A DNA stretch of 61,067 nucleotides, taken from positions 498,934 through 560,000 of the forward strand of contig CAXLNC010001431.1 in the NCBI GenBank assembly GCA_964187785.1, read 5' to 3'. Under the pieces are notes generated by a model, which saw only the letters and a list, made by a program, of their open reading frames with translations, did no database searches and had not been told where the DNA came from. Position numbers and translations under genes: made by a program. Positions 9,911-35,400 of the stretch are shown piece by piece (position 1 is the stretch's first letter; each line of letters begins with the position of its first letter). This DNA is from Amphiscolops sp. MND2022. Lineage: Eukaryota.

Positions 9911-10167
9911 ATGTCAGCACAATGGATACATTTTTCTCTCAGTTCATGTTCGACCCACCGTGAAGGGTACACGTTATACCATGTAACCGGATACAGACAG
10001 CAAATTGCATGCAACAGTCTGAAAAACATCAGCCCTGTGCAAAAGTTCACTTCGATGACTAGGTATCGCAAAATGTTGGAACTGCGAGAAGCGATTCTTT
10101 TGGAATGTGGTGAAGAATCCTTTATTACCGATCTCCCTGGTTTGAGGAAACCCACTGCTCTACGAAG
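9911..10167 (+). CDS. RPS6KC1: RPS6KC1-like exon 1 (PX domain, N-terminal part)
   Basis: MSAQWIHFSLSSCSTHREGYTLYHVTG...TRYRKMLELREAIL...LPGLRKPTALR. Ends AG|GT, phase 2. Confidence 0.8.
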
Positions 10168-13100
10168 GTTCTCGGCTCTTTTCTGTTTTTTTAACCCACC
10201 ACCCAAGATTTTTTTTGAAAAAAAAATGTGAAAAGATTAAAATAAAAAGAACTGAACTAAACTGGAAACCTTCACTTTTATATTTTTCCTCAGGATGACA
10301 GTTTAGAATTCAGATGCAAACTTGTTCACGCTATTTTGTCTTTGAAGTCACTCATTTTTGTTCAAGAAATCAGCGGCTTCCTGTTTTGAGTCACAAAAAG
10401 CAGTTAAAACAAATTTAATATTAGTCAAAATGCGTGGAAAATGTTTTGTTCGATTAATAAACTATTCTAATAGAAGTTTACTTACTGTTATTTTCACGCA
10501 TTTTGAATATAATTATGTTCGTACTAACTGTTTTTTCGTGACTTAAAACGTGAAGTCGTTGAATTTCTCGTGAATGCGCAAAGAAAAATAGTGTAAACAA
10601 AGTTTGTATCTCAATTCTAAATTGTCACCCTGGAAATAAACATAAAACAGAAGGTTTCCGGACTGTAATCAAGTCTTTTTGTTATATTATTTTCACTAAT
10701 TTTCAAAAAAAAATTGTGGTGGGGGGAAAACAGAAAAGAGGCAGGTTCTCCAGCAACGAAGTGACTCACCGACAACAGAGCATCGAATGTTTCTTCAGTT
10801 TCCTGGAAATCATAAATTCGCCCGTTTTGACCTCCGTTCTTGATGATTTCTTCAACATTGACACGCACAATCAACCTAGTATCGAAAATAGCATGGAACA
10901 TAATGGAAGCTTTCCTGTACATGAGAACCCAATGGAATCCAGTTCTACTGGGGTTTTCGCAACAACTGGAGTGTCTGATGCAAACTTTAATGATTTAATG
11001 GATGATTCCTCTAAAGTACAAATTGAGGCTGTTTCGCACAGAGCTATACATTCCAATCTACTTTCTCCTGATTGCTTCAGAGCATCCTGCGACTCGCTTT
11101 CATTGTCATCTAGGTATGGCGTCTGTTGTAGTCATTTGCAAAGCGACATTCAAAATTGCCAAACCAATTAGATTAAAAATCAAGTTTTCTAAATAGACAT
11201 TCAAAATTCCCAAATCGACATTCAATTTTAGTAATCTCCCAGCAGCAATTCGAAGCAGCTTTTTCATTCTTTCTACCTCTCTAGTGGCATGATTGTAGCA
11301 TATGCTAATTTTGAAGGTCTATTCTGTTAAATTTAATTGTCCTATTTTTTGGAAGTAACGAATTGGAATCAAGATTGATAAAACAGACTGATTTTCGAAA
11401 ACAAATTTGAATGTGGTATTGCAAATTTTCAACGTCCTACACTGTATATATTTCTATAGATTGTTTTCAGGGTCAAACAAGCCGGGAACGGCATAAGTCG
11501 GCGCCATTAGGCTCAAAAAATAGCACAAGGACTTCAAAGTGTCAAAGTATTCTCTTCTACAGTACCCGAAAAAGTTGGCCCGAAACTATTTTAGTCGTCT
11601 TTCACTTCATGAAGCGCCGACTAAAATGGATGGTTTAGCCCAGAAAAAATTGTCTTGTTTTAATCAGCGCTTTATTGAAAATTTTCTATATTTGCTATAA
11701 AACTTGAATATAATGACCGTGTGCGTCAAAACCATGGACAATTCCCAATGCGTCGAACTTTCAAACAGGCGAAAGTCAAAAATCGATTTATAAACAATAC
11801 AAATTTTGTTCAGCGTGCAGTCTGATTGATTGAAATTTAAAATCAAATCAATTTCAACCAATTGAAAGGCTGGGCATTCAAAAAAGAAAACACTGTATTC
11901 CTTCATATAAAATATCTAAAATGTAAATAAATATATGGAGGGCAGTGTAAAACCGTATTACTAAAAAAATTAAAAATTTCAACCAGTGTATATTATACTG
12001 GCTGATATAGCACTAATTTGTAATTGCTCAAATTCTGGTCGTCGAGAAGGATTTGTAATTAGGGCTGTATGAAAAGTCACCGAAACCACGTGTCGGTAGC
12101 TTGCAAGTTTTATATGCCCGTATTAGAGAAGGCGAGTCGGTTAACATTTTTTGGTGTCGTTGCGCTGCAAGTTACAGGGCCTCCTTTGCAGTATCAGCGT
12201 TAATGCTCCCAGAAAATAGCTACACAGCGGAGAAAATTACTAGGTGAATCAAAATCAAGGAATACATTTCGAGATGTCTAAGTTTCAATTGTTTGTCGAT
12301 AAAGGTTTAACGACAGCTTTGATTGAACGCTGCTGTCAATTATTATTATTTCTGCGATAGCAGGAATAATATTGAAATCTGGTTTATTGGAATTTTTTCA
12401 GTTCAAATTTTGTCTGAATTAGTTTTGTTTGATTCCGAGGACCTACTGAAAAATTCAGATACTTTGTTCGGCAGCGAGGATAAGCGTGAGATTTAAATTT
12501 CTCAAGTTGCCGACAATTCGTTTGTCGTGCGATGGAACGAGCGAGTGGTAATTATGCTTTCATACGCCGAGTTATTGAGATAAAGCGAACGAGTGTTAAA
12601 TATTCGTTCGCCGAGAGCTTCGCCTGCATTCAAATGCGAAAGCGAAACTCCGTGTACGCTTAGTAGTTACATTTTCTTCAGTCCGAGAAGAAATCAAGGC
12701 GGTGTCTTCTTTTCAACATGAAAGCCTAAAAGCAGAAATACTGTGCCCCACGGGGCCTTTTTTTTAAATAGGCAACTTCTTTTGAAGCGATAATATTTTC
12801 ACCCATCAAAATGAGAACGAAATGACTGGTAGCGGTGTCCATATTTTTCTGATTGTTCGAATATTCCTTAGTTGAAGATGTGATTACTTAACAAAAATAC
12901 AATTCTAAATAATTGACAGAAAATTTCAGTCAGTTTTATGTACAAATCATACGACTTCAAAGGCGCAAATTTTAATGTGCTCCGTTTTTTTTGGTTCACT
13001 TTGTAGTCGCTGATTTTTGAGAGCTGAAAATAACATATAATCCTAATTTTTGCACAATTTTGTTAAATTAGAAAATAGCCTCAGAATATGAATCAGTTTT

Positions 13101-16100
13101 TATTGGACCTTTTTGGTTTCAGATCCGACCATTTTTACGAAAGCTATGATGAAGACGAACTTTTTGACCATTTTCGGTCGTTTCTGTGTTTGAGGTGAAA
13201 TTGCTCGAAACTGGTTTCAACTGTTACCATTCCAATGCCAGGTTTCTGTAGCTCAGGTTTCCGTCCATCAAGTTTCCATATGAAGTTGTTGCTGAAAATC
13301 AACTCTGTAAGAAATGCTCAAACATTTGCCTGCTGTAGCCAATCTTAATACGTGGGGCGAGAGAACACGTTCCATTTTTGTCGAATTTCTCTTAGGTTGT
13401 TGATTTTCATCTAACATGTCATGTGGAAACTTAATAGAAGAGAACCAAAACTACAGAAACCTGGCATTGGAATGGTAGTCGCTGAAACCAGTTCAGTCCC
13501 GAGAAGTTTCACCCCAACCACAAAAATGACCGAAAATGGTCAAAAATTTGGTCTTAATTACTTTTGTAAAAATGATCGGATCTAAAAGCAAGAAGTTCCT
13601 GTCCTATAAAGACTGCTTCGAACTCTAAGGCGACGACTTCAGTTTTACAAAATCGGTGCCTAGTGAAATAGCATCGACGGTCACTTTGGTTGCCTAGAGT
13701 GCAGTTCTGAGATTTTTCTACATGTTTTCAACTCGAACAACTTTGACTTGTATAACAGTTCAACAACTACCATCATTCAGTTTTGGAATTGCAAACAAGT
13801 GAACCTCTGTCATTGTTTGAGTAGTTTGAGTAAACTCTTATTTCAAATTCAATGTCATGGTATATTTGTAGATCAGATCGACAGATTTTATCGCTCGGTA
13901 GAATGTGTTCACATCATTCCGAAGCATTCGTTTGCCGCCCGTTTGATTTTCCGTGTGCTTATCATTGTCAATAGTCAGGGTTGGCTGTTTTGAAACATTG
14001 TTTAAAAACATGCGGTATAAAAAACGTTTTAAAACATTACAACCTCTTGAAAGTGACTGTTTTTAGTCGGCGCTTTTCTTTAGAAAAGAGCGACAATAGT
14101 CATGGCTTTTCGTCAGTTTTTCGATACAAAATCATTTGAAGCCAAGGGGTCCCTTTGGATTTTTTTCGGTGTTGTGAGACCTTATTCTTTTTGCACATGA
14201 CGAAGTCAATGTGCATTGCAGTCCAGCTAAGAAAGTTTTTTTTTTCCACAGTAGCCAACTTCATAATAAGCCCCTTTTAGAGAAAAGCCAAAACCCCAGA
14301 GAGATTCGAACCTGCAGCCTCCCGATTGCGCGGCATAAGTGTTAACCACTGTGCCATAAGGACGTTATTGAATAAAGTTGAACTGTTGAATATATATACG
14401 CATGCGAATAAAATAATATATATACGCATATTAAAATAATCGTTGTCTTCGTCATGTGTTGCGAAGCACCGCTTCGCCTCTGTGTTCAACTTAACCGAAC
14501 AGCTCTTTTAATCTCAGTACTTTATCATACTTTGAGGGCCCGTTTCAGTGAACTACATCAGAAAACTAAAGAAAAACAATAGAAAACAAAAACGTGTGTT
14601 TTTTATGAAAATCTGTTTGTTTGATTAATATGATAAAAACTGTTTTTGCCAACCCTGTCAATAGTTGATGTTTCAGTTCTTCCGTGGCTGATTTATCGTC
14701 TGAAACGGCCTCTTCCGCAAGCACCGGTTTCGAATCGCTGTCCTGCTGTGACGAGAACAGTTTTCTGTTTGGAAACACAGTCCTTGCTCGCGATTGGCTG
14801 CAAGCTGCTTTGATCGAAGTCACCTTCATTTCACCCTCTTCAAGTTAGCCCCTAAATTGCATTTTAAAGGTTTTTAAGGTTTCAAGTAGAGGTGCTGCAC
14901 CGGACAAGAAAATTTCCGTCTGGCCGGACAACATAACTGAGCCGCCGGATACCTGCCGGACCGGACATTATCCTCGACTATAAGCTATAAAAGACTCTTT
15001 TCAGAATTGGGCAATGAATATGACGGAAAGCAAAGTAAACGCTTGCTCCAAAAAGTGAGAAAAATTATTCCGTTTTTTATTCAACATCGAAATACCTGAA
15101 ACTTATGACTGTCGTCGAGAAATGAATGTTGAAACATGGCTATAAAAGCATCAGTCTCGATTTTAATCTAAGATACGCGATCATTTGCTCAGATATTCGT
15201 CCAGCCGGATTCCGTCAAAAGTTCACCTCTAGCTTCAAGATTTTTTAAGTTGTTTGAAGGATTTTACACTGAGTTTTGACACCGCTAATCAACGATTTAG
15301 CGAATTAGCGGCCGCACAGAAATTTTTAAGCGAATTTATTTGCAATTCAAATTAGCGGCGGCCACTAATAAGTTGTCCAAATTCAAAATTTTCTCGGAAA
15401 ATACGCGGAGTGTCGAAATGAATTTCGAAAAATGCCAACTCTTGTAAAACTCACACAGTATGAGAAATTTTTTTCAAAAATTGAATCAAGTTATCGTTGG
15501 ATTTTGAAAATAATTGAATTCAAACATTTAAAAGGTTGAAGTGAACGTTTTTCAGCGAAATGGCAACTTTGAAGATAGCGGTTTGAACTGATTTTAATGA
15601 AATTTCCGCATTTTATGAATATATTCACTCGTCAGTGGAAAGATGAATACCTTCAGATTAATTTTACTGGAGCTGAACCTTGGGATTTTATTTTATTTCA
15701 GAGAAATACCTGATTGAAAATAGGGAAAACCTTTTCGACAAATTTGAAAAACCTGTGACTCAATTGTCCTACTCAATGCCTTCCGAATAAAGGACAAAAA
15801 ACATTTGATGTGTAGAACCAAAAATTGCCATTTTTCTTCGTTTTGAGTTCCTGACCGGAAAACTGCCATTGCAGCTTTTCACTCATCTCAAGAGTAAGTT
15901 TCACAAATTTGTCCTCTGTCGTTTTCTACTTTATTTCTTCGCTTTTGGCATGATTCTAAAGTTAACAATTTCAATAGACTTTTATTCGAGCTGATGTATT
16001 GAGATATTAAATCTCTTTCGTAGTTATGCGTTCTGAACGATCATTTTCCCCAGTATTTCATTTCCTTTCGAATTAATCTTGATCGAAGATCGTGATGTGT

Positions 16101-19100
16101 ATATTGAATCAGTTTTACGCAATTAATTTTGATTGAATTATCTGTTGAAGTACAGTACGATTAAGAAAACATCTCCCGGGCGATTTTAGGCTCGATTTTC
16201 TCGTAATCAATTGACAATTTACAATGCAAGAGTCAACACTGTGACTTATTACCGCCAAAATATAGACCAAAAAATTTACATTTTCCACTAGAGAATCCAA
16301 AGCTCACTTTTCGGACGCGCGAAGTGGCCCGTAACAAAGAAATCGCCGAAAAAAGTAGTTTGATTGAAGAAACAAAAACAAATGAAGACAGAAGATTTAA
16401 CGACAATTGACGGTCTACTAAGTGAATTAAAAAACGGAATACAGAAATATTTCCCTCTTCAAAATCGTAATATTTGTAAACAAGGCACTAAAAATCTTTC
16501 ACTTTCTCTGTCAATCATCTCATTACGTAATCAAATCTTCAACAATGAATGATTCGAACCTTCAGAAAACGTCTACTAAGTGAACCGAATAGAACAGAAC
16601 GCACAGAAGTATTTCACTCTTCAAAAACGTACAAATTGTCAGCAAGACACTGAAAAATTTCCACTTTCTCTGTCAATCATCTCATACGTGTAAGGACTAC
16701 TGTCCCTGGGTACTCTTAGGTCACCATTAGACCGTGAGTCCTTTTTTGTAATTTTATTTCTAAACCCATTGTTCACTTCAGCGTTCTCCTGACTATTAGG
16801 GGACGAACTAACCTCAGTGTCTCGATTCCCTGAGGATGAATTCGAACTCACTATATTTTGGATCTCTGGAATTACTCTCTCGGCTATTGCCGTGTTAATT
16901 GCCCTGTTTATCTGACTAGGCATTAATGACATCATTGAATCCATTTCTTGCGAAAGTCTCATGTTGAATTCGCTAGTGAAGGTTTCCAGTGTCTCTTGAA
17001 CCCTATCTTGCCTATGAACTGCATTTCCATGGACGTAATGTCCAAATTCGTTTTCATGAGATTCATACCGTGCAGATTGGGGATTGGACTCAATGTCTTG
17101 ATTGTTTTCCACATTCCCAATCATGTTTGAAAGTTCGCGTTCAATAGGATTAGTGTTCTCATTCCATATCATTACGTCCATATTTTGAAAGTCAGACATC
17201 ATGTCCATTTCCCTTGACTTCCTAGCTTTCGCCTTTTGCTTTCCTGTGGAAGGCAAAAGAGACAATTGCAAGAGGTAAGAATTGATTATCTTTAGGCTTG
17301 CAAAACAAAATCAATTGATAGGCAGCAGAGAATATAAAGTTGTGTCCCCCGGTCCAGAAGTCCCGGGTATATATAGGACAGCTTGCATGACTATCAGGAA
17401 AATAACCGTTATTTTCTAAAAATAAATAATCACTCGTGTAAAAATAGCATTACCTATTTATAGGTTACATGGCGTAATGACCTACTGGTCACATCAAAGG
17501 CGTCACACCGCCACTCCCATCTATTTCAACTAGCGTCCTCGAAGGACAACTGCACTTTCATGATCATGGTAGCAACCCTGCATGTATCATTCATATAATC
17601 ATTACATGTTTTGAGCATTCCTGTGTGTATTTCAGGCACGAGAGTTTGGACTTGGCCTAATACGGCTTTTGAGCCAAACGGGGGGGGTGATCAATTGTAG
17701 CACCCTTATTTGTAAGAATATAATTGTATGCATCATTATTCTTCAAGTTAAGTCTATTACTACAACAATGAAAGCACCAGTTAATTTGGACTCAGTGTCC
17801 CATTGCCTTAACAAGTACATCAATATTTGAAAGTATGCGGCGCGTGGCCATAATGTCCACTAATAAGAGCACTGTATTACATAGGTTCGAGAAAGAAAAT
17901 CGCCAGATTTAAGGTTTATAGAGACCACAGTTGCAGCGTTCCCGCAAGTAACAGTAGGCAAATGCCCTGCTTTATCGATGGAGGTAGAGAATTTAGAATA
18001 AAGGATCTCGTTTTTCAGAATGCTCTTTATTTGACTTAGTCCGTGATCAGACAAGTGTATCTGATCCTTCCGGAGAAGATTGATATTAATCTTATGCGCG
18101 ATCCCGCGAAATATCCACTTGCGGGACTTTGCTTTATCGCTAAGAATACGATTAACAGCAGCAGTTCGCTCGGGTTGAGGGAATCGGGGAGTAAGCCCAA
18201 TGATAACCACTTTGTCTGCTAATGCCACCAAACGGTCTGCAACGTCAATCGGCGATGATTCGTTGTTTCCGTTTTTGTCGAACAAGCAATTGGCACCAAT
18301 GAATAAAACCACTACCTTGAATTGACCTGTGGTGGGCAGAAAACCAATGACGTTCCAAGTTTCCCCCAGGTATCGTAAGAATATTGAAATTCGGGAAGGA
18401 AAGCTGCGAAGTCTGAAAGTTAGCGATTAGTAGGTTGGCTGCTGTGGACGGCTTTAATGTGTGAAATCACATTCGATTACGTTGAATAAAATTGTTGTGT
18501 AGAAAACAGGCTTTTAGGATGAAGCTTTTATTCAACGTAGTCTGAAAATGGAAATACAATTAGTTAGAGTTAGTCATGGTCAATAAGTTAGTAATAGACA
18601 GACAATGGCCATAGTCATTATATAACACATAGCTAGGCTTTTGCATTGACCAAACGTCAACGTCAAGGGCTATCGATCAAACTATCAATAATGTTGCCGT
18701 AGACGAATAAATGTTTCCTTTGTCGTGACATAGTTCTAATAAAGTATAAATCACAAATATTGAAAGTGTAATGTTCGAAAGTGACCCTGGTATGGTTTCA
18801 TTTTTATTGATGAATGGATCCATGTTGAAACTAAAATAGTCGGACTATTACAGTCACTTTCCCGTCAAGACTCACACGCGTGTAAATAAAATAGATAAGG
18901 CAGCCCATGTGGGATTTGGAGGTTGGCCTAGTGGTTACAGCGCTGACTTCCCAAGCCGCGAGAGTGGGTTCGATTCCCGCAACCATCTAATTTGTTTCAC
19001 CAATCCAGTGATGTACGAAATCAAAGGGTCCTCCTTCGTTTATTAAATGGATTTCAATGCGTTTTTTCTCCAATGTGGTTGTCGTCAAAGTGCGTTTTTT

Positions 19101-22100
19101 TAAATCATTCCCAAAAAGTTTCACCAATTAGGGCTTTCTTGAAGTTTTCCATTGTGTATTTTTCCGCCCTCTGAGATTTTGACAATTTTTCCATGGACAA
19201 TCTGGACCATAATAACAGACTTTGCGTTTTTTCAGTCCTGAGCGGGTGACAACTTAAGGGTTCTTGTCTTGTTTACTTCTCAAACTGATGAAATAGTATT
19301 GACTTTATTAGCTCGTTCCTATTCCTTCAATGTAAGGTTGTTAATAGTAGTTTTTTCACGGAAAATGTTTTAAACAGGTTCTTAAACAAAATATACTGTT
19401 TTTTGTTGTATTTTATTGTTTTTTCTCTCTTGGGGAAAACTATCGTGGAAAACAATGTGTTATGCACAACGGTTTTCCATTTGTTGCCAAATATTTCATT
19501 GTACAAAAATATAACAAGGATATATATAACGGGGATATATAAAAGAATATAAACCATGAAAGTCATTCACTTCACTGAATTTTTCCAGATATCTTTCACA
19601 CGAGACTTTTCTGATCTGAAAAACCTTAAAAGTACCAATCAAATTGAACAGTCACTCAGAAACTAGATCATAAACAACTAACTGTAAAGAAGTGTCTGAA
19701 AAAAAAACAGGAAAAGCAGTGTCTTTTTAAAATTGTTTCATGTTTTTTCTTGTGTTTTAATAAAACATGAATGTTGACAAGCAATAAGATTAAAAGCAAA
19801 TAGAAATCAATCTCTCGATGACCGCAAAAATTCGAGAATGTTCTAGAAAATATTTGAATATTCGAATACGAAAAAGGCCTTGCTACGAAATATTGTTTAC
19901 TAATATTTGTTATTTGTTGCTTAATTTATGTTCATTTAGCCGTCTGAAATGTACCATTCTAATCTTTTGCTGTTTATATTTTTGCCTCGAATCTTGATGA
20001 AATTCTGTACGAATTTGGCCTTCAAAACTGGGAATCTAATACATTGTTCCTCTCCATCAACTTTTACAAAACGATCTATAGAAACGGCGACAAATTCTAT
20101 AGTTATTTCAATGAATAAAACAACTTAACCACCTTGCTTCAAAGCGTTTGTTTTGCAGAGCCCTCCGAGGATTCTTCGAACAAGAGGGGTACTTCGAACA
20201 AGTACGCAGGCATGTCGGGTCTGTTGGGGAAGTTCTCCTCATCATCATCATCATCGCATTCCAAGAACTCTTATCTGGAACAAGCCGCCCATTACGTCAA
20301 ACTTGCCAACGAGTATGAAAACTGTGCCCAATACGAAGGTCAACACGCCGCAGCCAATGCTCAATAGAAACACGTGATATGTATATATGCTGGCTGTCTA
20401 ACCGCACTTCAGCCCCCCGCACTTTTTGCGGGCTGCGGGCTAATTAAAAATTTTTGGCATAAAAATGGGATCTCTTTCACTATGTCCCCCCAAAATCCCG
20501 ACTCAGCCAATCAGAAGCGTTGTTAAATAAGAGCAGATCTGCGTTATTAGAATGTGCAATACATGTATTTAATAGTGTTTCACTTTGTCCCCTCTTTTTG
20601 TTGTAGGGGGGGGGGGGTGAGATAGTGACATAGATTCGAGAATTTAAGTTGCATCTGAAACTCTTTCATAATTCGTTTCATAATTTTTGACTGAGTGGAA
20701 ACTTGGAAAATCAAGATGACTTTTCGAAACAACCTTTAATACTGTTTGATAATGGATTGGACTTTTACATGTTGGGCTTGAAATACAAATTAAACTATCG
20801 AAAGTTTTTCCTTCAAAGGGAAATCACACAGTTGGCTTTTTAAAGAATAATTGTTCATCTCAGTAGATTTCAAGTGAAACAAGACGCCCGCTAAGCACCG
20901 GGATATTTTCCGCGACACGCTTATTGCAAAAAAAGTATGGCGAAGGAGAGGATCGAACCCACCACCTACTGGCTGGGAAACACGAAAAAATTTCAAGCAC
21001 AAGCCCGGGTTCGAACCCACGACCCACTGGCTGGGAAAGCAATAAGTGAAGTGCACTTCACTCCATGGAGTGGGTATAAAGTGAAGTTTTGGCAGAATTT
21101 GTTAAAAAAACGCGTCACAGATCATGATTTTCCTCCCCCATTTATTTTGGCGGAAAATAACAAAAAGTAAACTTGTCGAGTAAAATTCTGGTTAAATAGT
21201 CAGTTTAAAAGATCAGTCAAATGTAATATTGCCTTGTACCATTTTTTCCCCAAAAATGTATAGCATATTGAGAATGATAGCAGGAACGACGGAGAAAAGA
21301 GAAATATTTGTGAATAATATTTCGAGATAGTAAATGTACTTTTGAATAATATGCAACAAAGTTCAATTTTTTCCATTTTCCGAAATACCAAATATTTGAC
21401 GGCATCGGCAGTCGAACCCGTGATCCCATGATCGGACGGCTACCGCACATCCTCTCATCCAAATTGCCGTATCATCGAGGGGTCCGAATTTAATCTTATT
21501 CTTATTTGCTTCGCAAGAATTCTATTGAGCATTGTCCCGCCCGCGCAGGTGCTTTCCACTCCTACAAAAGCTGCATCGAGATTCTGTTGCGAGGCGTGGC
21601 CAACGAAACAGATGGTGAGAAACGGGCAGCTGTGAGCGAACAAGTGACTGAGTACATCACAATCGCTTCTCAGATCCTCCTGAACTTCATCCAAACCGAT
21701 GCCGACCCCAGTCTGTGGTTGCAGGAATCCATCAGCAAGAGCTTCTCGGAGCTTGCCATGCCCTGCGAAGAACTCAAGTTTTTCACTATCCTCAGGGTGC
21801 GGCCGGCGGGCTTGAATTGAAATTCATTAAATATTGGACACCTAAGCTTCTAATAGATGCACCGCGCGCATCGAAACTAGGGATGTACCGGAATACGTTT
21901 TTGAGTTCCGGCCGGAGCCGGACCGGAACTTTGATTGTGCTATCCTACATTTACGTAACATATTTTTTGCTTTGTATCGATTGCTTTATATGCGATTTCT
22001 CAGAATTCGGAAACATATATGAAGAAAAAAGAAGCAGACCTCTTCCAGAAACTGGCGAAAAACTTTTATTTCTTCACCATAATCTGAAATTGTTTTAGTC

Positions 22101-25100
22101 AATTGTATCAAATTATGAAACAATTTAGAACAATTTGGAAACAATGCTGTTTTTAAGATAATTTTGTTCCGGCCGGAACCGGAACGTTTTTGAAATCCGG
22201 CCGGACCGGAATTCCGGTACATCCCTAATCGAAACCAAAAAGGGCGATGATTTTCAAATATGCAGCCCGTATTAAGGGGGCTGGTTAGCAAATAGACGTG
22301 TATGGTGTCGATACGCTGCAAGCTGCAGAGCCTTCTTTCAGTGTCAATAAGGTTCCCAAAAAATTAACATCGAAATCTTAGCAAGTGAAAAAATTAATTG
22401 TCATTTTTAGAACAGTTATATTGTAATGAATACCTTTCCAAGAAAAAAATCCTGGTTCCGTCTCTTTCAGTTTGGGCTTCATGGTATCTTCGTGGATGCA
22501 GTACGCAAGGTGCCTATAAGCGCGAAACGTGAACCTCTACAGGAAATAAATTAGGCTGTAAATTTTCATTTAAACTTTTCAAGATCTTATCGATGACATT
22601 CGTTTTGTTCTCAGTTTCAAAAAATATTCAGTAGTATGTATATACTTTTGTCGAAATCTTTCGTTGTTTTCAATTCTAAAAAGGACGATTCCTCATTTGC
22701 AATAGCGTATAGTCTACTTGAAAATAAAGGCCTCGAAGATAATAAACCTGGAACGTCATAAGTGGACGCCCGCTTAAGGTTCAAAGAGAGGAAAACTACT
22801 TCAAATCTTTGTTGAGAAAACTCAATTTAATAGTCTTGAAAAACCTAAAAAGGGAGCCTCTGGACCTAAAAATTCTTTTTATCTCACCAGAAAAAGTAAC
22901 AGCGCTTTTTCCAGTTTTATCACCAGAAATATCAAAAAGCCATAGCGAGAACCCTTTTGCGAAATGAAAATCAACCCCCCCCCCCAAAAAAAGGACGAAC
23001 AGTGTTAAAACAAAACATAAAAGCGGCCCTTCAGGCTTCAAAAACGCTTCTTCCTATCTAAAAGAATTAAATCGACCTTTGGTTTGTAATTTGCATGAAA
23101 TTCATTTTCGTATAACTTTTTTGGTCAGTTCGTGTGGATTAAAAAACCACAAGTCACTATAAAGGTCGCGTTTTATTTTCAGAAAAAAAGCGCCGACTAA
23201 AAACAAGACATTCTCTCTGAAACGTGGGCTAGACCATCCATTTTCCTGCTTTTTTGTCTCTGTCCTTACAGCATAGGCAGTACATTCAAGAACAGATAGT
23301 CTTGAAAATGTGTTAAACATTAAGATATTTTTCCACGATTAAAGTGTTGACATTCTATCAATTTCTAAGCCCGCTCAAGGTTCTCTCGCAAAATATGGTA
23401 GTCCGAGACAAAGACGGGGAAATCTACTTTCTCAAAGTTATCCGCAAACCTTTAGAGGGCTCTTACAACTTCAGGAATGTTCCCTTGTCAGTGAAACACA
23501 TGGCGAGGATTGTGAAATTCTACGACCTACCTAGCTGCTATGTTTTCTGCATTGAGTATTTGGGACAGAATATTGGTTTCGATTATCAAAATAATTGGAA
23601 GAATTCTCTTCAAACGACGCCAGACTTAACCCGAATCTTCAACACTTTCGAAAACAACGATAGCAGCAAATTCCATGACGATGAAACGCTGGGTTCTGAT
23701 TTGAATGGTTTTGTGGAATGCCCTGAAAAAGAACAACTGCCAGTGGTACGAGATCGATTTTTCGTTCAAAATGCGGCCGTGAACAAAGATTCAACTGAAA
23801 TGGAATCTGTTTTGAGCGATTTGGAAGAAAGTCTTTCGAATTCTTTCGGACAAACATTAACCGATGAAAGAATGAAAGAAACCCTGAGGCGTAAAATCAA
23901 GGAGGCCAAATTGGAATTTTCTCGTAACTCCGATTCTTCTCAGAACATTACTCATTTCCGGCCCATATCCGGTGGAGTCGCTAATCTTGATTGCTTTGAT
24001 GCGACCCCGGTTGTTGAAACTTCGAAAAACCTTTCAAACGATTCTCTCAAAACTTCTGGTACATTCAGTGATGATCAACATTATGACCTAAACAAACTAT
24101 TTTAGTTGCAGTGAAACCGAATTAAGTTGATTAAATTATTCTACAAGTTTTGATTTTTTTTCTGATATTTTGCCTTTTTTCAGAACGTTTTTTACTCACG
24201 TTTGAAGTAATTTTATGATTAAGAAAATTTTCGAATCAAAATGAATATTTCAACAATTTTTCCATCAATTGTTGGACCTATACAGTTAATGTCATTGAGT
24301 CATTTGGCGGTGTTTTTAATCATGTGTTAACTCTAAATGGACGATGAAATTTTTGACTCCATCCAAAAATCTGGTGCTTAAACTTTCAACCGCAATATCT
24401 TCTAAACTTTTCGAGTCCGACAAACGATTTATAGCGCGTTGGAAGGCAATCAGGGCTTTCAAATGGATTTTTGATCTACTGGACTAAACACTAGCACCGG
24501 ACTTTGCGCCAAAGCATTGCACACCTCGTTTCTCTGGCTGCTTTCCAGCATGTTTCAAAACATGCTGCGACCCAACCTCGATACCAGTGGGATAAAGTGG
24601 CCACAAACAGAAACTGAAAAAAAAACGAAAATATGCAGTTTTTTTTCAATTTTTGGTCCCGTTCTCTCGATTTCTGAGACATCAAGTCAATATTTCGTAA
24701 AAAGGCGTGCAATGCTGTAATATCTGCTACGTCTGAAAATCTTACTCAAGTGTTTTCTTTACCATAAGGTCAGCTGGTGCCTTCAGAAGTTTGTAGAAAC
24801 CAATAGGTACGAAATCGTGCCATCGTCCATTCAGGGTTAAAGATACAAAATGAAGAAAATACCCGATAAAGTATAAGCGATATAGTTGCAACCCCCAAAA
24901 AATCCTTATGAAATTCTTTCATTCAAAGTTTAAGATTATCACTGCTTGCTTTTCAAGATTCCTCCTGCATTCCGCGGATTCAAGATCTTCAGAGGATTAT
25001 TCTTCAGATGATCGACTGCTTCCAAGAACTGCATGATCTCAATCTTTTCTGGGGAACTTTCACCCCCAGTAACTTGACCTTCGAACGTCGTGACGTCATC

Positions 25101-25457
25101 AAAATGACTCATTGTTTCAACTGGCTTAGTCCGGACTATTATTCCAAGGATCTCTGGGATTACGAAGTTTTACCATTCGTGGCTCCAGAAATTTCGGAAA
25201 ACTTCATCTTTCAAATTCCTGACTCGAAGAGCGATGTTTTTAGTTTGGGTGCTGTTATTTACACGTTATTAACTAACCGGTTGGTCATAAACGACTTTCC
25301 CGGTCATCTCATTGACGAAATGAATGCCTACAGTTTAGGATACAAGTCTGCTGGAAGCTTAGCCGATTTGTTGAAAAAGATGCTAGCGTTTGATCCCAAA
25401 AATCGGTTGACGCTCAAAGGAACTAAGGCACATCCGTTTTTTCACGAAACTTTGTGA
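9911..25457 (+). CDS. RPS6KC1: RPS6KC1-like protein (PX - MIT - split pseudokinase). Exons 9911-10167, 10745-11113, 14677-14843, 20159-20338, 21549-21796, 23380-24058, 24958-25457; 2400 nt, 799 aa
   Basis: All six introns are GT-AG and phases agree (2,2,1,1,0,1). PX (HREGYTLYHVT...RY...LP...RF...RQQSIECFFSF...LDDFF), MIT (YLEQAAHYV...YEGAFHSYKSCIEILLRGVANE) and kinase halves (LKVIRK; FVAPEI; DVFSLGAVIYTLLT) match the RPS6KC1 architecture. Exon 3 is the least certain. Confidence 0.82.
10174..10742. mobile_element. Foldback/long-TIR non-autonomous DNA transposon forming RPS6KC1-like intron 1
   Basis: Imperfect inverted arms of about 265 bp starting GGCTCTTTT / ending AAAAGAGGC, spacer about 50 bp. 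Perfect 8-bp direct repeat AGGTTCTC at 10166-10173 and 10743-10750. Confidence 0.88.
10745..11113 (+). CDS. RPS6KC1: RPS6KC1-like exon 2 (PX C-terminal part and linker)
   Basis: CAG|G TTC: RFSSNEVTHRQQSIECFFSFLEIINSPVLTSVLDDFF continues the PX domain. Donor AG|GTATGG. Confidence 0.8.
11476..11626 (-). mobile_element. Minimal HINE/DINE-like element (about 150 bp)
   Basis: AACAAGCCGGGAACGGCATAAGTCGGCGCC at the left end and AAGCGCCGACTAAAA at the right end. Confidence 0.7.
13000..13750. mobile_element. Second foldback-type palindromic element (ends approximate)
   Basis: Long imperfect inverted arms, including a perfect 27-bp pair TACCATTCCAATGCCAGGTTTCTGTAG (about 13226) / CTACAGAAACCTGGCATTGGAATGGTA (about 13451), and GACCATTTTCGGTC / GACCGAAAATGGTC. 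Confidence 0.7.
14188..14486 (+). repeat. About 300-bp cassette (reverse tRNA-like segment plus Helitron-like 3' hairpin), copy 1
   Basis: Almost identical to 26536-26833; ends GCGAAGC-ACC-GCTTCGC-CTCTGTGTT. Confidence 0.85.
14677..14843 (+). CDS. RPS6KC1: RPS6KC1-like exon 3 (Ser-rich linker)
   Basis: Acceptor TTTCAG, donor A|GTTAGC, open frame SSVADLSSETASSASTGFESLSCC..., phases fit both neighbours. No domain motif. Confidence 0.6.
14887..15231. mobile_element. hAT-type MITE
   Basis: TIR TAGAGGTG / CACCTCTA, CCGGA subterminal motifs, 8-bp duplication GTTTCAAG / GCTTCAAG. Confidence 0.8.
16413..16688. repeat. Two diverged direct copies of an about 120-bp unit (158-bp spacing)
   Basis: GTCTACTAAGTGAA...CACTTTCTCTGTCAATCATCTCAT at 16413 and 16571. 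Confidence 0.7.
16689..17469 (+). mobile_element. LTR (TGT...ACA) of a gypsy-like retrotransposon, followed by a PBS-like TGGCG; contains an antisense ORF
   Basis: Starts TGTAAGG, ends GGTTACA, immediately followed by TGGCGTAATG (17470). The minus-strand ORF 16639-17271 lies inside and runs off the LTR edge. No clean target duplication. Confidence 0.6.
17860..18520 (-). pseudogene. Decayed SGNH/GDSL-like hydrolase ORF, probably TE-borne
   Basis: LLIANFQ (block I-like), ILTIPGG (block II, frameshift follows), VVLFIGANCL (block III), KDQIHLSDHG (block V DxxH). Confidence 0.65.
18918..18988 (+). pseudogene. tRNA-like sequence (Gly-CCC-like pseudogene or SINE head)
   Basis: A-box TGGCCTAGTGG, loop TTCCCAA, T-arm GTGGG-TTCGATT-CCCGC; acceptor and anticodon stems mispaired. 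Confidence 0.55.
20159..20338 (+). CDS. RPS6KC1: RPS6KC1-like exon 4 (start of MIT domain)
   Basis: Acceptor TTTTGCAG; ...SKNSYLEQAAHYVKLANEYENCAQYE; donor G|GTCAAC. Confidence 0.82.
20469..20640. mobile_element. Diverged MITE of the 25850-26131 family
   Basis: GATCTCTTTCACTATGTCC left end and shared ACTCAGCCAATCAG...GTTTCACTTTG core. Confidence 0.6.
20935..21045 (-). repeat. Two tandem tRNA 3'-half-like units
   Basis: TTTCCCAGCCAGT(G/A)GGT(C/G)GTGGGTTCGA occurs twice on the minus strand (anticodon-loop-like plus B-box). Confidence 0.6.
21549..21796 (+). CDS. RPS6KC1: RPS6KC1-like exon 5 (MIT domain to kinase start)
   Basis: GAFHSYKSCIEILLRGVANETDGEKRAAV...PCEELKFFTILR; donor GTGCGG, phase 0. 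Confidence 0.85.
21878..22227. mobile_element. hAT-type MITE, young
   Basis: Perfect 17-bp TIR TAGGGATGTACCGGAAT / ATTCCGGTACATCCCTA, perfect 8-bp duplication ATCGAAAC, CCGGA subterminal repeats. Confidence 0.92.
22743..23203 (-). mobile_element. HINE/DINE-like element, diverged
   Basis: AGCGCCGACTAAAAA at 23189-23203; degenerate 3' end (GGAACGTC...TAAGGTTCAAA) at about 22743-22790. Confidence 0.55.
23380..24058 (+). CDS. RPS6KC1: RPS6KC1-like exon 6 (kinase N-lobe and acidic insert)
   Basis: VLSQNMVVRDKDGEIYFLKVIRKP...MARIVKFYD...CIEYLG followed by a long acidic low-complexity insert. Donor G|GTACAT inferred from phase. Confidence 0.8.
24958..25457 (+). CDS. RPS6KC1: RPS6KC1-like exon 7 (kinase C-lobe and stop)
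   Basis: QRIILQMIDCFQELHDLNLFWGTFTPSNL...FVAPEI...DVFSLGAVIYTLLT...LLKKMLAFDPKNRL...AHPFF. Confidence 0.88.
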
Positions 25458-28099: not shown

Positions 28100-29400
28100 C
28101 TATCAGTTGTTTTTTGAAGACGCCAATTGAAGAACATCGGAAAAGTTCGTTCCAAGAACGTCTCAGTGTAGTGAAATTGGTGTCATGTCGACGCCCCTGG
28201 TACGCATCTTGTGAACGTTCATAGACTTGCACTTTTTGAGCTGTTTCTTCTAAATTTCATCGACCCTTTTGTTCGACTTTGGGAGAAGTTGATTAGGTCT
28301 CGCCAGACCAATCATTAGTTTGACCCCTTTCGTTTTGCATTCGTTTTTCCGTAATGTCTTTAGGTGACAGTGTTGAAACACTATTGTTCCCTCAAACACA
28401 TAATTTCCCAATCAACTACCAATTTTGTGTCGGCAAAAAATTAAATTTTGTTGCTCGAAAGAAAAACTAACTTAGTGGCAATGTGAGCGAATGGTAGAGA
28501 ATGTCGGGGAAGATAAAGTCGAATTGACACCCTGGTCGAGAGAGGGCTTGGATCAACCAGAAGTCAAGTGTAGGTTTTCAGAATTGTTTGGAAAAGTATT
28601 CATGTCGACCGCCTCTTTCGGCGAGAATTTGAATAAGTTTATATTGAGATGATTCCTCAATGATCAAGAAAGATTTGAAGCACCAATAACAGTCTCGTGC
28701 TTTTTCTCCATAAAATCTGAAAACAGATGAAACGTTATTTCAGAGTCAGAGCGGAATAGTTTTGGTAATGGAACATGCGTGCAAGCACAGACAAAAACAA
28801 AAAACATGCAGATTTTTAGTTTGAAGATCATTCTTTATAAAAAAATACTAATATGATTTATTTACACGTTTTCTGGAGGGCCTGGAAGATACCCGCATCA
28901 AGGTTACCCTCCATCCAGGCCTCCATACACGCGAGCAGGATTCCGCGCTCGTGTTTCCCGATCGCCCGGAAGGCGAACACGTCGAGCACGGGTTCCACTC
29001 TTGGCCTGTCGATGTACGATTGGATTCCCTGCAGCGAAAAGTTTGAACTTTAACTTTTGAGATGAAATTTCAACAAAAAGCTCTAGAAAAAGATCGAACA
29101 ACCTACCTCGTCCCCGACCATCATGATCAAGGTGTCGCAGGTGTCCCTCGACACCTCGAGGAGACATCCCGACCTGCACTTTTGGTTGACGAAGCCCCAA
29201 GCGAAGTGGTCGATGGCATTTAGTTCATTCCATAGAAGCATTTTGAAGTTGCGTGCAAAGATTTTACTTGTTTTATGGCAGTTAGCAAACTGATTTTCTT
29301 TTAGTTTCGAGCAAGGAATGATTTTTTCGAGCTCGTCAGGCTCTACCACTTTTCCAAGCACCTCCGTCGGTTTCTTCCAGTTTCACTTTGTTCTGGGAAA
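28100..29400 (-). pseudogene. Best-preserved copy of an unknown multi-exon gene with an SGNH-like C-terminal domain
   Basis: Exon ending ...TLIMMVGDE, GT-AG intron, exon 28866-29028 (GIQSYID...GIFQALQKT), 149-nt intron 28717-28865, then in-frame YFMEKKHETVIGASNLS. The unique flank continues IQALSRPG...GNNS. Stops and frameshifts present. Confidence 0.7.
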
Positions 29401-32400
29401 CATCAAAGATTTTAACCCAGACACGATTTCCATATCTAATCAATTGGAAACTCAGATAAATAACCATTTTTATGGCTTATAAGGTCTCGATCAAAGATTC
29501 GGCGTTCTTTTGAACCTAATTTCAAAGTGTTACAGGATTCACCTTTATTCCTTTGCATTTCGAAACCCAGCAAATTTGAGTTTCCATGTGATGAATCGAA
29601 GAAAAGACCGACAGTGGTAATTAATACTAGAATTGTATAGAAGAGTATTCATGTCGACCGCCACTTTCGGCGAGACTTTGGATAGGTTTATGATGAGAGA
29701 ATCCTCAATGATCAATAAAGATTTGAAGCACCAATAACAATCGCGTGTTTTCTCCATAAAATTTGAAAACAAATGAAACGTTATTTCAGAGTCAGAGCAG
29801 AATAGTTTTTGTAATGGAACAAGCGTGCAAGCACAGACAAGAACAAAAAACATGCAGATTTTTAGTTTAAAGATCATTCTTTATAAAAAAATACTAATAT
29901 GATTTATTTACACGTTTTTTGGAGGGCCTGGAAGATACCCGCATCAAGGTTACCCTCCCTCCAGGCCTCCATACACGCGAGCAGGATTCCGCGCTCGTGT
30001 TTCCCGATCGCCCGGAAGGCGAACACGTCGAGCACGGGTTCCACTCTTGGCCTGTTGATGTACGATTGGATTCCCTGCAGCGAAAAGTTTGAACTTTAAC
30101 TTTTGCGATGAAATTTCAACAAAAAGCTCTAGAAAAAGATCGAACAACCTACCTCGTCCCCGACCATCATGATCAAGGTGTCGCAGGTGTCCCTCGACAC
30201 CTCGAGGAGACATCCCGAACTGGACCTCTGGTTGACAAAGCCCCAAGCGAAGCGGTCGTTGGCATTTAGTTTATTCCATAGAACCATTTTGAAGTTGCGA
30301 GCAAAGATTTTACTTGTTTTATGGCAGTTAGCAAACTGATTTTTTTTAGTTTCGAGCAAGGAATGATTTTTTCGAGCTCGTCAGGCTCTACCACTTTTCC
30401 AAGCACCTCCGTCGGTTTCTTTCAGTTTCACTTTGTTCTGGGAAACATCAAAGATTTTAACCCAGACACGATTTCCATATCTAATCAATTGGAAACTCAG
30501 ATAAATAACCATTTTTATGGCTTATAAGGTCTCGATCAAAGATTCGGCGTTCTTTTGAACCTACTTTCAAAGTGTTACAGGATTCACCTTTATTTCTTTG
30601 CATTTCGAAACCCAGCAAATATGAGTTTCCATGTGATGAATCGAAGAAAAGACCGACAGTGGTAATTGATACTAGAATTGTTTAGAAGAGTATTCATGTC
30701 GACCGCCACTTTCGGCGAGACTTTGGATAGGTTTATGATGAGAGAATCCTCAATGATCAATAAAGATTTGAAGCACCAATAACAATCGCGTGTTTTCTCC
30801 ATAAAATCTGAAAACAAATGAAACTTTATTTCAGAGTCAGAGCAGAATAGTTTTTGTAATGGAACAAGCGTGCAAGCACAGACAAAAACAAAAAACATGC
30901 AGATTTTTAGTTTAAAGATCGTTCTTTATAAAAAAAATACTAATATGATTTATTTACACGTTTTTTGGAGGGCCTGGAAGATACCCGCATCAAGGTTACC
31001 CTCCATCCAGGCCTCCATACACGCGAGCAGGATTCCGCGCTCGTGTTTCCCGATCGCCCGGAAGGCGAACACGTCGAGCACGGGTTCCACTCTTGGCCTG
31101 TCGATGTACGATTGGATTCCCTGCAGCGAAAAGTTTGAACTTTAACTTTTGAGATGAAATTTCAACAAAAAGCTCTAGAAAAAGATCGAACAACCTACCT
31201 CGTCCCCGACCATCATGATCAAGGTGTCGCAGGTGTCCCTCGACACCTCGAGGAGACATCCCGACCTGCACCTTTGGTTGACGAAGCCCCAAGCGAAGTG
31301 GTCGATGGCATTTAGTTCATTCCATAGAAGCATTTTGAAGTTGCGTGCAAAGATTTTACTTGTTTTATGGCAGTTAGCAAACTGATTTTCTTTTAGTTTC
31401 GAGCAAGGAATGATTTTTTCGAGCTCGTCAGGCTCTACCACTTTTCCAAGCACCTCCGTCGGTTTCTTCCAGTTTCACTTTGTTCTGGGAAACATCAAAG
31501 ATTTTAACCCAGACACGATTTCCATATCTAATCAATTGGAAACTCAGATAAATAACCATTTTTATGGCTTATAAGGTCTCGATCAAAGATTCGGCGTTCT
31601 TTTGAACCTAATTTCAAAGTGTTACAGGATTCACCTTTATTCCTTTGCATTTCGAAACCCAGCAAATTTGAGTTTCCATGTGATGAATCGAAGAAAAGAC
31701 CGACAGTGGTAATTGATACTAGAATTGTTTAGAAGAGTATTCATGTCGACCGCCACTTTCGGCGAGACTTTGGATAGGTTTATGATGAGAGAATCCTCAA
31801 TGATCAATAAAGATTTGAAGCACCAATAACAATCGCGTGTTTTCTCCATAAAATCTGAAAACAAATGAAACGTTATTTCAGAGTCAGAGCAGAATAGTTT
31901 TTGTAATGGAACAAGCGTGCAAGCACAGACAAAAACAAAAAACATGCAGATTTTTAGTTTAAAGATCATTCTTTATAAAAAATACTAATATGATTTATTT
32001 ACACGTTTTTTGGAGGGCCTGGAAGATACCCGCATCAAGGTTACCCTCCCTCCAGGCCTCCATACACGCGAGCAGGATTCCGCGCTCGTGTTTCCCGATC
32101 GCCCGGAAGCGAACACGTCGAGCACGGGTTCCACTCTTGGCCTGTCGATGTACGATTGGATTCCCTGCAGCGAAAAGTTTGAACTTTAACTTTTGAGATG
32201 AAATTTCAACAAAAAGCTCTAGAAAAAGATCGAACAACCTACCTCGTCCCCGACCATCATGATCAAGGTGTCGCAGGTGTCCCTCGACACCTCGAGGAGA
32301 CATCCCGAACTGGACCTCTGGTTGACAAAGCCCCAAGCGAAGTGGTCGTTGGCATTTAGTTTATTCCATAGAACCATTTTGAAGTTGCGAGCAAAGATTT

Positions 32401-35400
32401 TACTTGTTTTATGGCAGTTAGCAAACTGATTTTTTTTAAGTTTCGATCAAGGAATGATTTTTTCGAGCTCGTCAGGCTCTACCACTTTTCCAACCACCTC
32501 CGTCGGTTTCTTCCAGTTTCACTTTGTTCTGGGAAACATCAAAGATTTTAACCCAGACACGATTTCCATATCTAATCAATTGGAAACTCAGATAAATAAC
32601 CATTTTTATGGCTTATAAGGTCTCGATCAAAGATTCGGTGTTCTTTTGAACCTAATTTCAAAGTGTTACAGGATTCACCTTTATTCCTTTGCATTTCGAA
32701 ACCCAGCAAATTTGAGTTTCCATGTGATGAATCGAAGAAAAGACCGACAGTGGTAATTGATACTAGAATTGTTTAGAAGAGTATTCATGTCGACCGCCAC
32801 TTTCGGCGAGACTTTGGATAGGTTTATGATGAGAGAATCCTCAATGATCAATAAAGATTTGAAGCACCAATAACAATCGCGTGTTTTCTCCATAAAATCT
32901 GAAAACAAATGAAACGTTATTTCAGAGTCAGAGCAGAATAGTTTTTGTAATGGAACAAGCGTGCAAGCACAGACAAAAACAAAAAACATGCAGATTTTTA
33001 GTTTAAAGATCATTCTTTATAAAAAAATACTAATATGATTTATTTACACGTTTTTTGGAGGGCCTGGAAGATACCCGCATCAAGGTTACCCTCCCTCCAG
33101 GCCTCCATACACGCGAGCAGGATTCCGCGCTCGTGTTTCCCGATCGCCCGGAAGGCGAACACGTCGAGCACGGGTTCCACTCTTGGCCTGTTGATGTACG
33201 ATTGGATTCCCTGCAGCGAAAAGTTTGAACTTTAACTTTTGAGATGAAATTTCAACAAAAAGCTCTAGAAAAAGATCGAACAACCTACCTCGTCCCCGAC
33301 CATCATGATCAAGGTGTCGCAGGTGTCCCTCGACACCTCGAGGAGACATCCCGAACTGGACCTCTGGTTGACAAAGCCCCAAGCGAAGTGGTCGTTGGCA
33401 TTTAGTTTATTCCATAGAACCATTTTGAAGTTGCGAGCAAAGATTTTACTTGTTTTATGGCAGTTAGCAAACTGATTTTTTTTAAGTTTCGATCAAGGCA
33501 TGATTTTTTCGAGCTCGTCAGGCTGTACCACTTTTCCAAGCACCTCCGTCGGTTTCTTCCAGTTTCACTTTGTTCTGGGAAACATCAAAGATTTTAACCC
33601 AGACACGATTTCCATATCTAATCAATTGGAAACTCAGATAAATAACCATTTTTATGGCTTATAAGGTCTCGATCAAAGATTCGGCGTTCTTTTGAATCTA
33701 ATTTCAAAGTGTTACAGGATTCACCTTTATTCCTTTGCATTTCGAAACCCAGCAAATTTGAGTTTCCATGTGATGAATCGAAGAAAAGACCGACAGTGGT
33801 AATTGATACTAGAATTGTTTAGAAGAGTATTCATGTCGACCGCCACTTTCGGCGAGACTTTGGATAGGTTTATGATGAGAGAATCCTCAATGATCAATAA
33901 AGATTTGAAGCACCAATAACAATCGCGTGTTTTCTCCATAAAATCTGAAAACAAATGAAACGTTATTTCAGAGTCAGAGCAGAATAGTTTTTGTAATGGA
34001 ACAAGCGTGCAAGCACAGACAAAAACAAAAAACATGCAGATTTTTAGTTTAAAGATCATTCTTTATAAAAAAATACTAATATGATTTATTTACACGTTTT
34101 TTGGAGGGCCTGGAAGATACCCGCATCAAGGTTACCCTCCCTCCAGGCCTCCATACTCGCGAGCAGGATTCCGCGCTCGTGTTTCCCGATCGCCCGGAAG
34201 GCGAACACGTCGAGCACGGGTTCCACTCTTGGCCTGTCGATGTACGATTGGATTCCCTGCAGCGAAAAGTTTGAACTTTAACTTTTGAGATGAAATTTCA
34301 ACAAAAAGCTCTAGAAAAAGATCGAACAACCTACCTCGTCCCCGACCATCATGATCAAGGTGTCGCAGGTGTCCCTCGACACCTCGAGGAGACATCCCGA
34401 ACTGGACCTCTGGTTGACAAAGCCCCAAGCGAAGTGGTCGTTGGCATTTAGTTTATTCCATAGAACCATTTTGAAGTTGCGAGCAAAGGTTTTACTTTTG
34501 TGGCAGTAAGCAAACTGATTTTTTTAAGTTTTGAGCAAGGAATGATTTTTCGAGCTCGTCAGCCTCTACCACTTTTCCAAGCACCTCCGTCGTTTTTTTT
34601 GATCTGGGAAACATCAACGATTTTAACCCAGACACGATTTCCATATCTAATTAATTGGAAACTCAGATAAATAACCTTTTTTATGGCTTATAAGGTCTCG
34701 CTCAAAGACTCGGCGTTCTTTCAAACCTATTTTCAAAGTGTTACAGGATCCACCTTTATTCCTTTGAATTTCGGAACCCAGCAAATATGAGTTTCCATGT
34801 GATGAATCAAAGAAAAGACCGACAGTAGTAATTGATAGTAGAATTGTTTAGAAGAGTATTCATGTCGACCGCCACTTTCGGCGAGACTTTGGATAGGTTT
34901 ATGATGAGATGACTCCTCAATCTTTCTAGAAAGATTTGAAGCACCAATATCAATCGCGTGCTTTTTCTCCATAAAATCTGAAAACAGATGAAACGTTATT
35001 TCAGAGTCAGAGCAGAATAGTTTTGGTAATGGAACAAGCGTGCAAGCACAGACAAAAACAAAAAACATGCAGATTTTTAGTTTAAAGATCATTCTTTATA
35101 AAAAATTACTAATATGATTTATTCACACGTTTTCTGGAGGGCCTGGAAGATACCCGCATCAAAGGTACCCTTCATCCAGGCCTCCATACACGCGAGCAGG
35201 AGCCGGCGCTCGTGTTTCCCGATCACTCAGAAGGCGAACACATCGAGCACGGGCTCCACTCTGGTCCCGTCGATGTACGATTGGATTCCCTGCAGCGAAA
35301 AGTTTGAACTTAACTTTTGAGATGAAATTTCAACGACTAAAAGTTCTAGAAAACAAAGATCGAACAACCTACCTCGTCCCCGACCATCATGATCAAGGTG

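Follow-up and report, generated by a model that had tools for sequence, protein, structure and literature searches.

The window considered here, a 61,067-nucleotide stretch of Amphiscolops sp. MND2022 (GenBank assembly GCA_964187785.1, contig CAXLNC010001431.1, positions 498,934 to 560,000 of the forward strand), holds an RPS6KC1-like gene whose PX-coding exon is split by a chimeric miniature inverted-repeat transposable element (MITE). With a probability that we put at roughly 0.6, this chimeric insertion is spliced out of the transcript as an intron that takes both its GT and its AG from the target-site duplication. Splicing at exactly these two dinucleotides, read from the genomic sequence, is probable.

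A perfect 8-bp direct repeat, AGGTTCTC, is located at 10166-10173 and 10743-10750 (8/8 identical, 577 bp apart), just as an earlier reading made from the sequence only had stated, and the site reads ...CTACGA AGGTTCTC (569 bp) AGGTTCTC CAGCAAC.... The element is the whole 569-bp stretch between the two copies (10174-10742) and forms a single long hairpin with a folding energy of -131 kcal/mol as DNA (z = -15) and -232 kcal/mol as RNA with flanks (z = -23). The description of this stretch as a near-palindrome was generous: the single hairpin and arms of about 250-265 bp stand, but the complementarity of the arms is about 71% overall and 82% in the best 60-nt block. The hairpin is closed by a perfect 14-bp terminal stem, in which 10176-10189 pairs with 10727-10740. 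The features of the split exon are as follows, with a slash marking splice points here and below; HMM stands for hidden Markov model.

9911..10167, plus strand: exon 1 of the PX-MIT-kinase (RPS6KC1-like) gene, ATG to ...CGA AG, with the codon AGG split (phase 2); N-terminal half of PX
10166..10173, plus strand: left AGGTTCTC copy of the target-site duplication, holding the proposed donor GT at 10168-10169 (AAG/GTTCTC); single in the relative L041
10174..10491, plus strand: left arm, MITE consensus 1-315 (nhmmer against the family HMM, alignments, tree)
10176..10189, plus strand: 5' half of the terminal stem, CTCTTTTCTGTTTT; inverted repeat, pairing probability about 1 in the RNA ensemble
10491..10742, minus strand: right arm, reverse complement of MITE consensus 2-264 (nhmmer against the family HMM, shared deletion, tree)
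10694..10700, plus strand: candidate branch site, CACUAAU, a putative branch point with the proposed acceptor 45 nt downstream
10727..10740, plus strand: 3' half of the terminal stem, AAAACAGAAAAGAG, containing the decoy AGs 10732-33, 10737-38 and 10739-40
10743..10750, plus strand: right AGGTTCTC copy of the target-site duplication, with the proposed acceptor AG at 10743-10744; its GTTCTC begins exon 2
10745..11113, plus strand: exon 2, C-terminal half of PX plus linker, ending at the donor TAG/GTATGG; colinear with the related protein P0001 up to ...SLSLSSR

The two AGGTTCTC copies are not a chance repeat, since they flank exact MITE termini, other copies of the same family have 8-bp duplications and a relative carries the unduplicated target. 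Both element junctions are crossed by short-read contigs from four runs (two samples), so the insertion is not an assembly artefact. Contig ctg183446 of another public assembly also carries the element; it is 100% identical to the window, possibly derives from the same data and is not an independent observation.

A full HMMER search with exon 1 returned three relatives, P0001, P0002 and P0003, with 65%, 51% and 44% identity, one of them of Tara Oceans metagenomic origin. In all three, one open reading frame (ORF) runs through the genomic counterparts of exon 1 and exon 2 without a break, and none has an intron at the site. The closest relative (L041) reads CGT AGG TTC TCC GGT, i.e. CGT AGGTTCTC CGGT, with the target present once and the protein running ...ALRRFSGNEV. 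Because the three relatives are without the intron and the nearest has a single intact target, the element is an insertion and not an old intron; on the aligned sequences L041 is the empty site, and the intron position was gained by the insertion. The proposed entry of a DNA transposon into a formerly uninterrupted PX exon, and the comparison of intron positions suggested with it, were thus borne out. Of the features by which introners are recognized, an intron-free position in related species is found here, and the boundaries of the proposed intron coincide with the terminal inverted repeats (TIRs) and the target duplication. A search with exon 2 for closer relatives returned only P0001, the window's own protein is absent from the protein collection searched, and a look-up of the exon-1 ORF found it not on record. 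Synonymous divergence (dS) between the window gene and L041 is saturated and the split is deep, so that the comparison with L041 sets no recent upper limit to the age and is uninformative about the ratio of non-synonymous to synonymous change after the insertion.

Removal of 10168-10744 (GT...AG, 577 nt, phase 2) joins ...PTALR/RFSSNEV... in frame, and the joined frame reads MSAQWIHF...PTALR/RFSSNEVTHRQQ.... Deleting these positions confirmed that GT and AG lie within the duplication copies and that the frame is restored exactly. The donor is AAG/GTTCTC and the purine-rich 3' end is AAAACAGAAAAGAGGCAG/G, both as the sequence-only reading described them.

We propose that a non-autonomous cut-and-paste transposon inserted into the PX-coding exon at the target AGGTTCTC and duplicated its 8 bp. 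With AG/GT in the sense orientation of the target, the left copy would supply the GT donor (10168) and the right copy the AG acceptor (10744), and the spliceosome would remove the element plus one copy, so that the original mRNA is restored exactly. The expected spliced junction is ...CTACGAAG/GTTCTCCAGC..., at 10167/10745. U1 would pair with AAG/GUUCUC just outside the stem, and the hairpin of about 270 bp may set the AG at 10743-44 beside the donor and hide the three decoy AGs. Such help from the hairpin is suggested by the predicted fold: all three decoys are base-paired in the predicted RNA structure, and the UAA (10697-10699) of the candidate branch site forms a bulge with an unpaired probability of about 0.99. 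Splicing is inferred because the single-nucleotide polymorphisms (SNPs) of the PX exons are synonymous only, the ORF is intact and other exonic copies of the family carry AGGT in sense orientation.

The element belongs to an ordinary MITE family, for which an HMM was built from 23 clean copies. The consensus has 411 bp with TIRs of about 45 bp (GGCTCTTTTCTGTT...AACAGAAAAGAGCC), and 8-bp target duplications are found in 46 perfect and 16 one-mismatch cases among 75 full-length matches (most copies counted once per strand). In the 1.07-Gb genome the family termini have at least 5,148 exact 14-mer matches, compared with 66 for a reversed control pattern. A further full-length canonical copy is located in the window itself at 56804-57191 on the minus strand (HMM positions 1-411). 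The family has the 8-bp duplications and short-to-medium TIRs of the hAT superfamily, but its termini begin GGCTC, unlike the usual hAT YARNG. Target duplications of 8 bp are also made by superfamilies other than hAT, and it is the duplication length that gives the family its provisional label hAT-like.

The search of the species' own genome gave thousands of first-look candidates, none of which matches the whole element. Instead, each genomic locus matches the element query in two parts on opposite strands, positions 1-318 and positions 318-567. In the maximum-likelihood tree the right arm forms a clade with the copies L009, L030, L028 and L055 (support 99/95), whose 12-bp deletion it shares, while the left arm is sister to a subfamily clade of the L005/L007/L014 type with moderate support (82/92, not starred). 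The two arms thus fall into different subfamilies and are 71% alike. Judging from alignments and tree, the element is a one-off head-to-head chimera of two MITE subfamilies, each arm truncated on its inner side and both outer ends being MITE left ends. No sibling copy of the composite, with the same junction or with both arms, was found in the own-genome search. Since both ends are flanked by one perfect duplication, the chimera must have moved as a single unit. A foldback transposon family, as had been suggested at first, was rejected: no other copy has the composite junction, the arms come from different subfamilies and the normal members are MITEs of about 411 bp, so that the element is a unique chimera instead. 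It may have formed when two inverted neighbours were mobilized together and their centre was later lost by deletion, or through template switching during gap repair. Double elements such as maize double-Ds likewise consist of two inverted copies that behave as a single unit with identical outer ends; the window element differs from double-Ds in that it is not nested, both arms have lost their inner part (truncation at consensus 315 and 264) and they come from different subfamilies.

An independent foldback derivative of the MITE family, with a different central junction and a right arm cut short by unrelated sequence, is found at L032:1297-1760 (G000:C4, ~83,543,280-83,543,750). Judging from this copy, palindromic derivatives seem to arise repeatedly in the family.

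A further 41 family copies were sampled regardless of their target. Recognizable coding exons hold two of the 41 (L002 and L065), and in both AGGT is present on the sense strand of the duplication. The first, a canonical copy at L002:1477-1901 (G000:C12, ~2,847,860-2,848,280), splits a LIM domain of a multi-LIM (FHL-like) gene. On the sense strand its duplication reads GAAGGTCG; the frame restored has 375 amino acids, and splicing at AG/GT would restore ...HVEF/EGRKWHESC... exactly, with the predicted junction ...GAGTTTGAAG/GTCGAAAGTGG.... Pfam LIM matches lie on both sides of it, the downstream one below the cut-off, and the insertion is also present in a 99%-identical second haplotype (L077:3740-4190). 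The second copy, at L065:1345-1767 (G000:C7, ~71,598,660-71,599,080), has the sense duplication CAGGTTCT, and its excision restores a frame of 162 amino acids that enters a C2H2-like zinc finger (...SKPESK/QVLKCSKCQ...) below the Pfam cut-off. Together with the window gene, three exonic cases of the family are known, of which the C2H2-like one is weak. Other copies with long restored ORFs (L013, L006, L034 and L007) showed no credible domain and were not counted as coding.

Genome-wide, duplications bearing AGGT were found at 84 of the at least 5,148 termini (~1.6%), compared with ~1.7% expected from composition, and the family is on this count without a target preference for AGGT. The exonic AGGT pattern resembles the outcome of a survival filter. 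General enrichment is absent: 27% of the 41 copies have a restored ORF of 100 amino acids or more, compared with 21% of random flank positions. The check proposed earlier, to search for family copies and determine the share that sits in exons at AG/GT-containing targets, turned up the family, AGGT at chance level and two sampled exonic copies with sense AGGT. The window element is taken to be an ordinary MITE that by chance landed in a splice-competent target, not a specialized introner. The base following AGGT in the 84 duplications is T in about half by eye (not counted), and both the window's AGGTTCTC and CAGGTTCT of L065 resemble the element terminus GGTTCT; this T may reflect a mild target preference or base composition.

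The genotyping covers two samples with four runs from one study. SNP 10147 is separated from the junction by 20 bp and linked to it within one 31-mer; both of its alleles continue into the element, and every visible haplotype carries the insertion. Among the joints listed from the short-read contigs (genomic only), none skips the 577 nt. All four SNPs in exons 1 and 2 are synonymous (10111 and 10147 in exon 1, 10820 and 11108 in exon 2), for which P is ~0.003 at an expected synonymous share of 0.21-0.24. In the downstream exons, 15 synonymous and 5 non-synonymous substitutions and a single in-frame indel of 12 bp separate the reference and alternative haplotypes, where the synonymous share expected is 0.21; over 2,793 bp of intron, there are 58 substitutions together with 33 indel columns. 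The pattern of these substitutions indicates that the gene is under purifying selection at present.

Dating from the divergence of the arms was rejected, since the 15-20% between copies is subfamily diversity, most copies keeping perfect duplications; for the age only terminal branch lengths were used, with caution. The terminal branches of the arms are 0.088 and 0.15, compared with a family median of 0.052, and suggest that the arms are not young, but as ages they are overestimates if the nearest family members are unsampled. The earlier claim of a recent gain is not upheld: the arm branches exceed the family median, both alleles and both samples carry the element, and the split from the relative is deep. 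The 627-bp ORF of exon 1 plus exon 2 is intact, and if the branch lengths represent decay in place, so open a frame would be unlikely without selection.

The alternative-haplotype contig ctg183068 (ERZ25074608) ends inside the large intron before the PX exons are reached and gives no second-haplotype view of the site. Compared with window 15000-19759, this haplotype (L081/L082) has a tandem duplication of ~7.6 kb in the large intron, which includes the 210-amino-acid minus-strand ORF of window 16639-17271. The haplotypes diverge by 1-3%, which makes heterozygosity very high.

Several observations weigh against exact splicing at the duplication. Apart from its GT, the donor GTTCTC does not match the usual consensus, and at its 3' end the proposed intron has no pyrimidine tract. 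The predicted fold leaves the 3' region, with most of the candidate branch region, in duplex form, which could hinder binding of U2AF and U2 instead of helping. Three AGs (10732-33, 10737-38 and 10739-40) precede the proposed acceptor by 4-12 nt; an acceptor at 10733 or 10740 would put exon 2 out of frame, and one at 10738 would lengthen the protein by two residues. A search for RNA runs of the species or locus found only four DNA-like runs from one study. The selection signal in the PX exons consists of only four SNPs, and the stronger 15:5 signal comes from downstream exons that a PX-less transcript could use as well. The coding status of the L065 copy depends on weak Pfam matches, and the possible overestimate in the branch lengths acts in the same direction.

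These points bear on how the insertion is tolerated. It could be a disrupting (null or hypomorphic) allele whose transcript is spliced wrongly or not at all and which drifted to high frequency, with PX-less function from a downstream start, or still early in decay. Such an allele is consistent with the weak donor, the missing pyrimidine tract and a branch region that lies deep within a long duplex, and also with a search for RNA runs that turned up DNA-like runs only, the read-through ORF that ends after 21 extra codons from exon 1 (stop at 10229-10231 inside the element) and a genotyping of two samples from one study only. On the other hand, the PX-exon SNPs are synonymous in four of four cases, exons 1 and 2 are still open although the arms show 9-15% private change, the element is on both alleles of the linked SNP in both samples, and the other clearly exonic copies carry sense AGGT, which neutral disruption does not predict; we regard disruption as unlikely, if a serious alternative. 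Removal as an intron through other sites, e.g. the acceptor AAG at 10738 (adding R-G), cryptic sites or several isoforms, is rather improbable. In its favour are the competing AGs and the documented cases of introners by which codons are gained or lost (PMC9860276, Aureococcus, +12 nt). Against it, only one of the three alternatives keeps the frame, the predicted structure has the competing AGs in base pairs, and the orthologues align across the junction without a gap, the exact join giving ALRRFS(S/G)NEV; a variant with two more residues is still compatible. An ancestral intron with a MITE inside it, or an assembly artefact, is scarcely credible, given that three relatives are without the intron and the nearest has an intact single target, the duplication abuts the MITE termini exactly and short-read contigs cross both junctions. 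Exact splicing at the GT and AG of the duplication is thus the reading that we carry forward.

Precedents for this mechanism exist. The sequence-only reading had pointed to introners in Micromonas and Aureococcus; that introns are born from transposable elements via target duplications is correct, but such introns are known beyond these two, in dinoflagellates and other algae, with few cases from animals. In Polarella glacialis, a target duplication of the form AGGH supplies both splice sites in the introner-like classes 13 and 14, and class 3 has an 8-nt duplication with introns in 5 frames and both orientations (bioRxiv 10.1101/2020.10.14.339549). The window shares with them a DNA transposon with TIRs, both splice sites from a duplicated exonic target and an mRNA that would be unchanged; of the five possible offsets of AGGT in an 8-nt duplication, the window uses 1, L002 uses 3 and L065 uses 2. 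It differs in the animal host, in the GT donor instead of the dinoflagellate GA/GC variants, in the palindromic chimera, and in that splicing is here deduced from the genome alone. The MITE family also differs in lying, in the sample, mostly outside recognizable coding exons (2 of 41 copies within them) and in having AGGT targets at 1.6% against 1.7% by chance.

Elements of Micromonas and Aureococcus are described as MITE-like with TIRs, one splice site being carried by the element, and with strong gene enrichment (Huff et al. 2016, as cited in PMC11282704; Gozashti et al. 2022, PMC9860276), and in Florenciella both splice sites are recruited from the sequence at the insertion point (Gozashti et al. 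2022, PMC9860276). In all of these, MITE-like elements with TIRs and target duplications create spliceosomal introns, as proposed here. Unlike the elements of Micromonas and Aureococcus, the window element carries neither splice site, and its family shows no sign of specialization. The tunicate Fritillaria borealis has MITE-derived introns that are mostly without GT-AG and depend on an altered U2 spliceosome, according to the account of Henriet et al. (2019) given in PMC11282704; there too exonic transposon insertions are neutralized at the RNA level in an animal lineage, whereas the ends of the window intron are canonical GT-AG. The nonconventional introns of euglenids resemble the proposed intron in that terminal inverted repeats can juxtapose the intron ends, but they have non-canonical ends instead of GT-AG, are removed after the conventional introns and are seen as circles. 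The window case is probably an animal instance of a known mechanism with an unusual chimeric-palindrome structure, and not a new mechanism.

The exon 1 product is 65% identical to residues 1-83 of P0001. Pfam PX is found in P0003 at residues 44-124 (22.8 bits, cut-off 21.6), and the best solved structure for the region is the PX of SNX15; both place the insertion inside the PX domain, and through these orthologues the PX assignment made earlier holds. On the window's own spliced product and on P0001 and P0002, the Pfam PX match is below the cut-off. MIT and Pkinase domains lie on a single ORF of 534 amino acids in the relative (L046:15628-17232), colinear with the window exons. The downstream exons are as follows.

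~20152-20338, 21549-21796, 23380-~24100 and ~24987-25457, plus strand: downstream MIT and kinase exons (tblastn with the relative's 534-amino-acid ORF)

By its order of an N-terminal PX followed by MIT and protein-kinase domains the gene is classed as RPS6KC1-like, a label that stands for domain order. A protein atlas search with the gene product returned generic kinase clusters only, with no taxonomy. The window introns 20339-21548, 21797-23379 and ~24100-24986 interrupt what is a single MIT and kinase ORF in the relative, so that the gene has at least four introns that the relative is without (the element and three downstream); for the downstream ones either gain here or loss in the relative may apply. 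The donors of two other introns in the gene are also weak (GTCAAC and GTGCGG), and these introns must be spliced because highly conserved exons lie on either side. The exon after intron 5 also starts GTTCTC (..CAAG/GTTCTC), and AGGTTCTC spans that boundary too. A transposon origin of introns 4 and 5 was considered and is neither supported nor excluded, since the own-genome matches are only nested repeats (20877-21164 and 21875-22229) and not the intron ends. Elsewhere in the window, 28580-35500 is a tandem array of ~1,046-bp units that are 92-97% alike, each with an 87-amino-acid minus-strand ORF, visible as ladders of BLAST matches against L078 and L079.

Intron gain in animals is rare and poorly understood. 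The locus is a clean before-and-after pair, with an empty site in the relative and a filled site here, and it offers a rule open to testing across the genome, by which an insertion into an exon survives only if its duplication holds AGGT in sense orientation. If splicing is false, the case would be a fixed disruption of a conserved PX domain, and ordinary. If exact splicing is true, an unspecialized ordinary MITE can create introns in an animal, and a purine-rich 3' end without a pyrimidine tract is spliceable when a long stem joins the sites. A wider view, which we hold tentatively and at slightly under even odds, is that intron gain by unspecialized MITEs is ongoing in this animal: exonic insertions with sense AG/GT would be spliced exactly, persist and become fixed, the TIR or foldback stem would juxtapose the splice sites and mask decoy AGs, and the window gene would be a snapshot of this process. 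Provided that splicing is exact, this genome would lend itself well to work on how introns are born.

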